From assembly GCA_013115145.1 (NCBI GenBank), contig JAAPAO010000076.1:25324-89323 (forward strand): a DNA stretch of 64,000 nucleotides, in the 5' to 3' direction. Source of the stretch: Perkinsus chesapeaki ATCC PRA-425 (Eukaryota; Protista; Perkinsozoa). A program made the position numbers and the translations under genes. The first letter of the stretch is position 1; every line of letters starts with the position of its first letter. A model generated the notes under the pieces. The model had not been told where the DNA came from and did no database searches. It saw only the letters and a program-made list of their open reading frames with translations. Of this stretch, positions 42,414-62,352 are shown one piece after another.

Positions 42414-42836
42414 TCAACAGCTGCCCACTTGGAGAGATACCGGCGAGCCTAAGAATTCCGTTTTCAGTACGTTGCTTTTCTCGTCGTGCTTGAAGATGAA
42501 CAGGTCGCTATACTTCATTTTCAAGATCCTCAAGCAAGCTATATTAACGGCATCCACGAAGGTTTCATAGCTCCTGGTCGAATTGGCAGTTACCATGTAG
42601 ATGTTGGGTCTGAAAAAGTTCAGACGAAGCTCGGCTGACTGTTCACTGGCAGCACCACACTGAACGCTCAAGGCAATATCTGCATCGATCTTCTCATATA
42701 ACCATTCCGTTTCGACACATTTATAAGGACTGTATCGGTTGAAATATTTGCCTGCTGGGGGGCTGGGCTTATTCATTCTTGAGAAGACCATCAGGATGGG
42801 TGTGAGCCATACGATGCATGTATGCACAACGTTCAT
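42414..42836 (-). CDS. Secreted four-cysteine protein, paralog B (140 aa, intronless)
   Basis: ATG 42836. Signal peptide, PSPPAGKYF, CVETEW, CLRILKM, C-terminal GSC. Confidence 0.85.
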   Translation of the reverse strand: MNVVHTCIVWLTPILMVFSRMNKPSPPAGKYFNRYSPYKCVETEWLYEKIDADIALSVQCGAASEQSAELRLNFFRPNIYMVTANSTRSYETFVDAVNIACLRILKMKYSDLFIFKHDEKSNVLKTEFLGSPVSLQVGSC

Positions 42837-42919
42837 TTGTAGAATAATTGGTAATTTACCAATGGTAAACAACTAACAGGATCTAGAGGGACTTCCGAGA
42901 TACCAAATTCGTGGTTTTG

Positions 42920-43527
42920 GCATTGACTTACTACCAGAGAGTCGATGATTCGCCTCCTAATCTCCCGGACCGGGAGGGTGAGGAAAACGAGTATAAACTC
43001 GGAGTTTAAAACTCCTGAACTAAAGTTCAACATCATCTAATTCAAATGAACTAGCGGCGCACCGGAGCAGCGCGAATGTGCGCCAGACTGGTCCGATTGA
43101 CCAAGCAAGAAAAGAAGTGGGAAGCAAGACTCTCCGATGCGACACGCATGCACACGGTCCAACCGTAACGGCTGGAGACAGGGAGCGGGCCGCTCTGAGC
43201 GACTGTCTAAATGGCAGCATGGCACGGCTAGTATCGATCTGCGGTGGTTGGCTGAGCACGGGAATGATAAACGGTTAGCAGGGGGCTTCGCTGGGAATCT
43301 ACCCGCAACTCGTCACCTCGCTACAGAAGAATAATCCTAAGACTTTCGGAATGCTGAAGCATCCCAGAGGATACCATTCCATGGAGCAGTCACCAATGAT
43401 AACCACATCCTTTGTTTCTAAAATGGAGATGGAATTTCCTCGTCCTCGCTTCCTCCAGAAACCCAAATCTGCCGAGTGTCGCTGTTCTGTCTCCATTTGC
43501 GCATTCATGCAACTTGCAGTGTCTGGG
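42920..43527. repeat. 608-bp dispersed repeat, copy 1
   Basis: Direct copy at 61745-62352; 11 substitutions counted by eye, no indels (~98%). Confidence 0.95.
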
Positions 43528-44163
43528 GCAGCCACCGGCTGTTGCGCCACTTGTGCTCCTGTACGCTCCTGTATTGCACTAGCACACTGACAAAGCCATA
43601 AGAATAGTAACATCCAGCAACCACTAGTTGTGTTCTTGATACTAGACCTTCTGGGAGAAGGACGAAGCTCGGCGAATCGTCAGTGACTTCTATTCGATGG
43701 TCGCAAGTTCGATCCCCAGGCCTATCATTTTTTTGCGGAAGACATTTGTTGACCGCAAAGCTTTGGGAGCTGGACGCAGAGTGTTCGTAAAGTGAGAGCA
43801 CACGCTCCGCTTGCTCCGCGATTGGCACACATATAGCGTTCGGCAGAGAGTATACCGTATAGGATATAGCGGACGCCCACTCGAATGATATCATCGGATT
43901 CCTTTATGTGAATCAGATATTCATTCCAAATATGGCCCTACATTATAGTCGTAGATCGGCATTTGCTTTGCTCAGTAAATAAAGGTTATCACAGTAACCT
44001 ATGTTGAGTTATGAAATTGGTAGCATTGTGGAAGAACACACAAAAGCAAACACACAAGTGCATTTGAGTAGATTTCATAGTCTCGCGTATAAGCTCAACT
44101 GTTAAGCTGTTACAGTTGAAGTAGTTCCGTGTGGTATTCCGTTCGGCAGCAGGATAGTTATTA

Positions 44164-61112: not shown

Positions 61113-61155
61113 ACCAGGGCCAGGAGTACAGGGCCCCACCAGGACGTTCCAAAAT

Positions 61156-61563
61156 TTAGCATGCACCTTTAGTAAGAACGATCTCTGCATTTAAGAAATC
61201 GGTTGATATCTCGTCAATTTCTCGGTCATATTTGAAAGAGTACAAGTCAAAAGTATCCATTTTGAGTATCCTGGAGCAAGCCTTATTTACCAATTCAACG
61301 AATAATACATGCTTTTTATCGGAACCGCCCGCCACCTCGAACTCGTCGGGTCCCGGGGAGTTAAGACCTAGCTTGACTGACGATCTGGTGACTGTATCAC
61401 ATTTAACCTTCAAGCCTATAGCCTCCATAGCCGTCCCGTATATCCATTCGGTCTCAACGCATACAACACTGTTAAGCCTCTTGAAGTAGTTACCCGAAGG
61501 GGGGCTGGGAGCACCAAATATCTCAAGGATGGACAACGCGAAGTAGGCGAGCGTGACTTTCAT
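61156..61563 (-). CDS. Secreted four-cysteine protein, paralog C (135 aa, intronless)
   Basis: ATG 61563. Signal peptide, PSPPSGNYF, CVETEW, CSRILKM, C-terminal GAC. Confidence 0.85.
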   Translation of the reverse strand: MKVTLAYFALSILEIFGAPSPPSGNYFKRLNSVVCVETEWIYGTAMEAIGLKVKCDTVTRSSVKLGLNSPGPDEFEVAGGSDKKHVLFVELVNKACSRILKMDTFDLYSFKYDREIDEISTDFLNAEIVLTKGAC

Positions 61564-61744
61564 GTTTAAACACCTAAAAATTGAGCACGAACAGACACGC
61601 AATGCACAACCAGCTGGAAACCACCCTATTTACACCGCCGAATGGGCCCTTCAAGGGAGTCCTTAGTAGGGGCCCTTTAGTCCAAAGGGGGGCAGCCTAA
61701 AACGAGACATAGCTCTTGGTGTTGGGGCCCCTGCTTTACCAAAA

Positions 61745-62352
61745 GCATTGACTCGCTACCAGAGAGTCGATGATTCGGCTCCTAATCTCCCGGACCGGGA
61801 GGGTGAGGAAAACGAGTATAAACTCGGAGTTTAAAACTCCTGAACTAAAGTTCAACATCATCTAATTCAAATGAACTAGCGGCGCACCGGAGCAGCGCGT
61901 ATGTGCGCCAGACTGGTCCGATTGACCAAGCAAAAAAAGAAGTGAGAAGCAAGACTCTCCGATGCGACACGCATGCACACGGTCCAACCGTAACGGCTGG
62001 AGACAGGGAGCGGGTCGCTCTGAGCGACTGTCTAAATGGCAGCATGGCACGGCTAGTATCGATCTGCGGTGGTTGGCTGAGCACGGGAATGATAAACGGT
62101 TAGCAGGGGGCTTCGCTGGGAATCTACCCGCAACTCGTCACCTCGCTACAGAAGAATAATCCTAAGACTTTCGAAATGCTGAAGCATCCCAGAGGATACC
62201 ATTCCATGGAGCAGTCACCAATGATAACCACATCCTTTGTTTCTAAAATGGAGATGGAATTTCCTCGTCCTCGCTTCCTCCAGAAACCCAAATCTGCCGA
62301 GTGTCACTGTTCTGTCTCCGTTTGCGCATGCATGCAACTTGCAGTGTCTGGG
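61745..62352. repeat. 608-bp dispersed repeat, copy 2, bracketed by imperfect 29-bp direct repeats (61718-61746 and 62351-62379)
   Basis: ~98% identical to 42920-43527. Flanks GGTGTTGGGGCCCCTGCTTTACCAAAAGC / GGTGTTGGGACACCTGCTTTACCAAGAGC (26/29). Confidence 0.95.

Follow-up and report, generated by a model that had tools for sequence, protein, structure and literature searches.

How does a nearly identical stretch of non-coding DNA come to lie immediately upstream of two genes that are themselves only distant relatives? The question is raised by a locus of Perkinsus chesapeaki, where the window (the whole stretch of 64,000 nucleotides that was analysed) carries a 608-bp non-coding cassette twice, each time 5' of a member of one family of small secreted-type proteins.

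Genes A, B and C and the shared cassette

The three family members considered here and the two cassette copies are as follows.

39399–39809, minus strand: gene A, a 137-aa paralog, absent from public protein sets
42417–42836, minus strand: gene B, a 140-aa small secreted-type protein, absent from public protein sets
61159–61563, minus strand: gene C, a 135-aa paralog, corresponding to NCBI FOL47_010142, whose model differs at the C-terminal end
42920–43527, minus strand: cassette copy 1, 84 to 691 bp 5' of the ATG of gene B, native there and the donor
61745–62352, minus strand: cassette copy 2, the derived duplicative insertion 5' of gene C

At the protein level A and B are 49% identical, A and C 42%, and B and C 38%. 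Third codon positions agree between B and C at 46%, and the four-fold sites in their shared amino acids (6 of 20 matching) are saturated, so that the contrast with the 98% identical flank is real; the initial annotation was right to regard the flank as much younger than the genes. The AlphaFold2 model of gene B (pLDDT 91.7) has a beta-barrel and a helix. Structure matches for this fold are all generic lipocalin- or avidin-like barrels (Z 5–8), for which reason no function is assigned to the family. It is Perkinsus-wide, with at least 49 members in P. chesapeaki. Neighbouring ORFs have no Pfam match, and the spacer between A and B contains no paralog of the divergent plus-strand neighbour.

The near-identity of the two copies, first noticed in the initial annotation together with their distances from the ATGs of B (84 bp) and C (182 bp), is borne out: 11 of 608 positions differ (98.2% identity; 8 transitions and 3 transversions), there are no indels, and the edges are sharp. 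The copies lie 18.8 kb apart on one contig, on the same strand and in direct orientation. Searches of the 41.7-Mb assembly with the whole cassette and with a 201-bp core found these two copies and no others. Differences are rarer in its interior than towards its edges, and 6 of the 11 fall within 50 bp of an end.

The content of the cassette is unremarkable. A minus-strand ORF of 104 aa (43299–43613) was rejected as a gene: its start lies outside the cassette and copy 2 has a TGA stop. Pfam has no match for it, no homolog turned up in the genome or among public protein sets, and in comparison with a related sequence upstream of A (see below) it is broken by indels and stops. A structured RNA was likewise rejected, the cassette having no conserved fold and no Rfam match even at an E-value of 1; its fold z-scores are -2.1 and -1.1, and pairing compared with block 1 of A (see below) gives two compensatory against four broken pairs on one strand and no compensatory pairs on the other. 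The spliced-leader sequence of P. marinus (PMC3101222) has no match with up to three mismatches anywhere in the window, and no spliced-leader gene or relic was found. What both copies do share is a small scar.

42994–43015, no strand assigned: palindromic scar of the excision-footprint type, 22 nt, identical in copy 2 at 61819–61840

The pattern of this scar matches the window 14 times strand-wise, which amounts to seven sites because the pattern is strand-symmetric, while shuffled sequences gave none. A transposon-excision-type scar common to both copies marks the cassette as typical non-coding DNA of this genome.

Upstream regions of genes A and B

The initial annotation held that gene A lacks the cassette. 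Two blocks of old homology connect the upstream regions of A and B, one of them inside the cassette and the other outside it.

43240–43345, minus strand: block 1 of B, within the cassette; shares old homology with sequence 5' of A (nhmmer E-value 1e-8; 66–71% identity)
40800–40910, minus strand: block 1 relic 5' of A, 990–1101 bp from the ATG of A
43905–44028, minus strand: block 2 of B, which the cassette does not include; collinear with 41175–41286 of A (nhmmer E-value 3.9e-5)
41175–41286, minus strand: block 2 5' of A, the counterpart of 43905–44028

The relic at A corresponds to about 110 bp of the cassette core in diverged form; the core aligned to the A upstream region with a local score of 42, compared with 21.7 +/- 2.3 for shuffles (9 sd above). 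The core of block 2 is identical between A and B at 23 of 24 nt. Both blocks occur in the same order in A and B and, in a search of the genome, are confined to the A/B locus. Since the cassette core and a block outside the cassette both line up with the region upstream of A, this gene holds a decayed relic about 1 kb 5' of its ATG rather than lacking the cassette. The flanks of copy 1 show no target duplication. These alignments establish, at the level of DNA sequence, copy 1 as native intergenic DNA of gene B, whose closest paralog is A. The A relic could in principle represent an older arrival of cassette sequence instead of shared ancestry; block 2 argues against this.

The four-fold sites of A and B match at 15 of 25 (60%), slightly below the 66–71% identity of the blocks. 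With the two values so close, the blocks are not claimed to be under functional constraint; they show shared ancestry, not function.

The insertion site upstream of gene C

The second copy lies at the end of a low-copy repeat, R.

62348–63134, minus strand: repeat R, the insertion target; other copies on C2428, C607 and C3152, 85–90% identical
62351–62378, minus strand: upstream copy of a 28-bp target duplication (end of R), its last two bases overlapping the cassette
61718–61745, minus strand: the 28-bp target duplication, downstream copy; it begins with a base that overlaps the last base of the cassette

Upstream of copy 2, R is 87% identical to its counterpart on C2428 over about 680 bp; a further, partial match lies on C3204 (120 bp at 73%). 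The two 28-bp direct repeats agree at 25 positions. Within the flanking repeat, a 23-nt core is found at three places in the genome: one on either side of copy 2 and a third, unbroken, on C2428. The sequences adjoining copy 2 at its two ends map to one stretch of C2428 (723–754; window 61715–61746 on the downstream side), where R passes through the insertion site without interruption, representing an empty site. At the junctions the overlaps are 2 nt (CC) and 1 nt (C), too short to distinguish from chance. Taken at the level of sequence, the direct repeat and the empty-site paralog demonstrate copy 2 to be an insertion with target duplication. The view that the cassette had either arrived or been homogenised much later than the genes diverged is thereby upheld for late arrival at C, but not for homogenisation as the origin. 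The accompanying statement that the cassette has no terminal inverted repeats, tail or credible ORF also stands, but it had overlooked the 28-bp direct repeat at copy 2.

The end of R on C2428 lies 227 bp 5' of an ORF for a secreted aspartyl-protease-like protein. R is common to gene C and an unrelated secreted gene, lying in each case about 200–230 bp away from the ATG, with matching orientation.

Beyond the cassette edges, B and C resemble each other no more than shuffles do, in the spacers as in the upstream flanks. Hidden homology past the edges was considered in the form of two mutually exclusive MAFFT alignments; neither scored better than shuffles, and both were dropped. No homology was found that could have guided the cassette to the site at C.

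Origin of the second copy

We consider it probable that one event at the DNA level, by staggered-break fill-in or template switching, duplicated sequence from B and inserted it upstream of C. The cassette itself belongs to the ordinary non-coding intergenic sequence 5' of gene B. A piece of 605–608 bp of this flank was copied, a single time and fairly recently, into the end of R, which was already present about 200 bp 5' of the much older paralog C, leaving the donor intact and duplicating 28 bp of the target. By a repair route, a staggered break would have been filled in with ectopic template DNA; by a replication route, a template switch of the MMBIR/FoSTeS kind would have returned 28 bp behind its point of departure. 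The event may have been helped by GC-rich palindromes (GGGGCCCC-type) at the target. The crowding of differences near the cassette edges, with 3 of 28 positions differing in the target duplication, fits either error-prone synthesis where the template was switched or an insertion of greater age that was homogenised later in its interior.

Templated insertions of the MMBIR/FoSTeS type resemble the arrangement in most respects. The donor is kept nearby in cis, edges are sharp with 1–2 nt of overlap, a short recipient flank is duplicated, the event is single, element hallmarks are absent, and base changes crowd near the junctions. At about 605 bp, the cassette exceeds in length most of the templated insertions described in PMC8421209. 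The duplicated 28 bp can equally be explained by staggered-break fill-in, the mechanism being read from the junctions. Templated insertions also do not predict a landing 5' of a paralog, as at C. By a rough estimate, a random insertion would land about 200 bp 5' of a paralog, and equally oriented, with a chance of about 0.4% within the window, so that random placement is improbable.

This placement, 5' of two paralogs at similar distances and in matching orientation, is what might speak for the proposal in the initial annotation of a portable promoter or expression cassette that family members exchange, in analogy to the upstream classes of antigenic-variation genes, the more so as the adjoining R is itself found before both C and the aspartyl-protease-like gene. 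Such a cassette would make up a regulated or selected system. The proposal is nevertheless unlikely. The cassette is carried by just two of at least 49 family members, and one of these copies is native, which means one transfer and not an exchange network. When 30 family loci with 1.5-kb flanks were compared all-against-all, flanks diverged along with their genes, and B and C were the sole pair with a young flank on old genes. In P. falciparum, practically all var genes fall into a small number of ups classes (PMC13086428). These classes are like the B/C case in placing conserved 5' flanks before highly diverged parasite secreted or surface genes, but they cover nearly all members, and here two of at least 49 share a flank, one of them natively. 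A related and comparably improbable idea is that promoter-bearing 5' flanks of secreted genes would be copied by non-homologous insertion with a preference for 5' flanks, the B-to-C event and R being examples. If true, such copying in Perkinsus would amount to a shuffling of regulatory flanks.

Interlocus gene conversion, homogenising an upstream region that B and C had shared since ancient times, is very unlikely. Direct orientation, a distance of 18.8 kb on one contig, and fewer differences inside than at the edges are all as expected of conversion between copies, but both sides of copy 2 are the duplicated end of R and not older B-like homology, and the B and C flanks past the cassette are no more similar than shuffles. 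The human gamma-globin genes are the classic case of interlocus gene conversion that is limited to the 5' portion of duplicates. They resemble the present locus in having a young, near-identical tract beside older divergence in tandem paralogs, and a later homogenisation of the cassette interior is possible; unlike there, the cassette was inserted in unrelated DNA with a target duplication, not within older homology. Conversion may have acted between the copies after insertion, but it cannot have been their origin. Slightly less probable still is insertion in the 5' flank of the family by a mobile element of low copy number (an element with this target had also been suggested) or by a retroposed transcript. 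The direct repeat at copy 2 looks like a target site, and the genome has traces of active-looking transposons. Usual transposase-made target duplications, however, are shorter than 28 bp; there are two copies in the whole genome, of which copy 1 is without target duplication and collinear with the upstream region of A; the ends have no TIR, LTR, A-rich or simple-repeat tail, nor is there a spliced-leader relic; and coding capacity is absent, the 104-aa ORF being without homologs. Transposable elements and solo LTRs can donate promoters, and copy 2 is similar in being a discrete block, newly placed a few hundred bases 5' of a gene between direct repeats. Unlike them, it is a copy of a neighbouring gene's flank and has no repeat family, element ends or coding relatives.

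The least probable reading is an assembly artefact, with one copy misplaced or chimeric. The assembly is fragmented (3544 contigs), the contig ends in repeats 1.6 kb past copy 2, the titles of cited work call Perkinsus polyploid and heterozygous, and a gap lies between the copies.

49734–49830, no strand: assembly gap (run of N), inside a 21-bp minisatellite (49639–49980)

Against an artefact, the 11 differences between the copies show a natural transition bias, and both junctions of copy 2 carry the end of R and are mutually consistent, with three differences between the two flanking copies of that end. The minisatellite continues on both sides of the gap with unchanged orientation and is unique to this place in the genome, so the join is well supported. 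In the forward frames the gap is non-coding; its distances from the two cassette copies are 6 kb and 12 kb, and it does not affect the finding.

Overall, a single duplicative insertion from B to C reveals no new mobile or regulatory system, and its importance is modest. It offers a clean natural example, readable at the donor, at the two junctions and at an empty-site paralog. The locus also puts on record a family of small secreted beta-barrel proteins found across Perkinsus, of which members A and B are new relative to public protein sets. To judge from its position (-84 to -691 of B), the insert may bring much of the promoter-proximal DNA of B to C, and the expression of C could be coupled through it to that of B; the insertion may equally be neutral. 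Duplication of an upstream region before a distant paralog can rewire expression in an expanding family of parasite secreted proteins.

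Genes A, B and C and their protein family

The window forms the closing 64 kb of a contig of 89,323 bp (assembly 41.7 Mb, 3544 contigs) and contains three paralogous genes for small proteins of secreted type.

Paralogs in the window
39399-39809, minus strand, paralog A, single open frame
42417-42836, minus strand, paralog B, single open frame
61159-61563, minus strand, paralog C, single open frame

Protein identity is 49% between A and B, whose four-fold sites match at 15 of 25, and 38% between B and C, whose four-fold sites are saturated (6 of 20 matching). A profile of the three detects at least 49 family open frames in the genome, and an exhaustive profile search gave 44 cluster representatives, of which all ten that were looked up came from Perkinsus species or MMETSP transcriptomes. 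Annotated relatives exist in P. chesapeaki, P. olseni and P. marinus, and MMETSP transcriptomes contain relatives as well; the family has no match in Pfam. The AlphaFold2 model of B is confident (pLDDT 91.7, 40-sequence alignment) and shows a hydrophobic helix at the N-terminus, then a beta-barrel that includes one helix. Structure searches with it returned only generic small barrels, lipocalin-like and avidin-like (Z 5-8). Neither A nor B has an entry in public protein collections; these unannotated genes are intact members of a Perkinsus family of small secreted beta-barrel proteins, at least 49 strong. The first 132 residues of C are identical to the NCBI hypothetical protein FOL47_010142 (Perkinsus chesapeaki). 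Beyond the stop codon of C, at a distance of 44 bp, is a perfect palindrome of 73 bp (61040-61112; arms of 36 nt around a 1-nt centre), and the NCBI model splices the end of C into it, replacing the family's conserved C-terminal Gly-x-Cys. This end of FOL47_010142 is probably a mis-model.

The cassette and its origin upstream of B

The only long near-identical repeat inside the window is a 608-bp cassette, found at 42920-43527 (copy 1) and 61745-62352 (copy 2). The copies are 98.2% identical and without indels; their 11 differences are substitutions, of which 8 are transitions and 3 transversions. Copy 1 lies 84 bp 5' of B and copy 2 182 bp 5' of C, as the initial annotation had it. The contrast it drew between a young flank and old genes is also real, when this identity is set against the saturated four-fold sites of B and C. 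Searching the whole genome gave exactly two copies. The N run (49734-49830), well away from the cassette copies and from genes A, B and C, sits within a 21-bp minisatellite. Since this repeat continues in the same orientation on either side and occurs nowhere else in the genome, the contig join across the gap is supported. The minisatellite (49639-49980) has stops in all three forward frames, and two reverse frames are open.

Paralog A had been described as lacking the cassette. This needs correcting: a diverged relic at 40800-40910 matches cassette positions 43240-43345 (block 1, nhmmer E 1e-8), and local alignment of the cassette to the upstream region of A scores 42, against 21.7 +/- 2.3 for shuffles. 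Outside the cassette, a collinear block 2 joins 43905-44028 (B) to 41175-41286 (A; nhmmer E 3.9e-5); in its core of 24 nt, 23 positions agree. A genome search placed both blocks at this locus only. From these shared blocks, the old A/B tandem duplication appears to have taken in more than 1 kb of upstream DNA, which makes the cassette of B native, a part of the ancestral flank, and sets the direction of copying as B to C. The blocks indicate ancestry; their identity (66-71%), slightly above that of the A-B four-fold sites (60%), does not prove constraint. Two dispersed repeats came into the spacers after the A/B duplication.

Dispersed repeats in the A and B spacers
40926-41100, A spacer, between the ancestral blocks, 175-bp repeat, at least 27 copies, up to 96% identical
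43632-43764, B spacer, tRNA-like repeat of ~125 bp, at least 31 genomic copies

In the second, a tRNA T-arm-like box precedes a run of T; neither ARAGORN nor Rfam calls this repeat. The block 2 profile has a weak third match (37899-37975, E 3.5e-4) ~1.4 kb past the stop of A, which may be a remnant of another old duplication unit.

As initially noted, the cassette holds no credible ORF: a 104-aa frame begins outside it, is without relatives and does not stay open in copy 2. Rfam gave no match to the cassette even at E 1, its fold energies are ordinary (z -2.1 and -1.1), no conserved fold was seen in the relic of A, and the spliced-leader sequence (PMC3101222) is absent. Both copies contain a perfect 22-nt palindromic scar (42994-43015 and 61819-61840), built of 7 bases, the reverse complement of 8 bases, then 7 bases. 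Being strand-symmetric, the pattern gives 14 strand-wise matches at 7 sites in the window (shuffles, 0). By this scar the cassette is recognisable as non-coding DNA typical of the genome; the scar is older than the copying event.

Insertion of copy 2 into repeat R

The 630 bp upstream of copy 2 are part of a low-copy repeat, R (62348-63134), with other copies on contigs C2428 (87%), C607 and C3152; contig C3204 matches it over 120 bp at 73%. In the gene-strand direction, a 28-nt direct repeat brackets copy 2 (62351-62378 before, 61718-61745 after; 25 of 28 identical), and its 23-nt core has three genomic sites, namely the two flanks and C2428. Because both flanks align to the same positions of C2428 (723-754), where R crosses the 28-mer without interruption, copy 2 is an insertion: the cassette entered 3 bp before the end of R, duplicating 28 bp of target. 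Donor and target overlap at the junctions by just 2 bases and 1 base. The reading that the cassette arrived later is borne out, and no inverted termini were found, as first reported; the flanking duplication had been missed.

The copies of R are located at contig ends. On C2428, R (73-754) ends 227 bp upstream of the ATG of an ORF (982-2076), in the same orientation as at C. The 364 aa that it encodes begin with a signal-like segment and match an aspartyl protease in Pfam (E 2.4e-8); R thus lies upstream of two secreted-protein genes that are unrelated to each other.

Mechanism of copying

A duplicative insertion at the DNA level fits the features: the donor stayed in place in cis, the edges are sharp, the junctions overlap by 1-2 nt, 28 bp of flank are duplicated, and there is neither a tail nor element ends. 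A staggered break could have been filled in, capturing an ectopic template, or replication could have switched template and returned 28 bp behind its departure point; templated insertions by MMBIR are a comparison case (PMC8421209). Short GC palindromes are abundant in the target region and might favour stalling or breakage; in the variant families of Plasmodium, a link between DNA secondary structures and recombination has been described (PMC3936766). The differences between the copies pile up near the junctions: 6 of the 11 lie no more than 50 bp from an end of the cassette (p about 0.004; 0.015 with an adjacent pair counted as one), and the duplicated target also differs at 3 of 28 positions. 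This crowding suggests either that synthesis at the points of switching was error-prone, or that the insertion is older and the two copies have since been homogenised with each other in their interior.

Copy 2 landed ~200 bp upstream of paralog C and in the same orientation, and comparison of B with C detected no flanking homology that could have guided it. The chance of such a landing at a random site within the window is roughly 0.4%, a coincidence of the kind inflated by searching for oddities, and would be higher if insertions prefer open 5' flanks. The initial annotation had proposed an undescribed system, either a portable promoter or a family-targeting element. This is not supported by two genomic copies, nor by an all-against-all comparison of 30 family loci, each with 1.5-kb flanks, in which B and C are the only pair with a young flank on old genes; in other similar pairs the flanks resemble each other as the genes do (one such pair at 96.7% over 2.1 kb). 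There is still a small probability that 5' flanks are shuffled more generally, because R is shared by C and the aspartyl-protease-like gene. What the cassette pair records is one small, dispersed duplication of DNA upstream of a gene, an event of a known kind.
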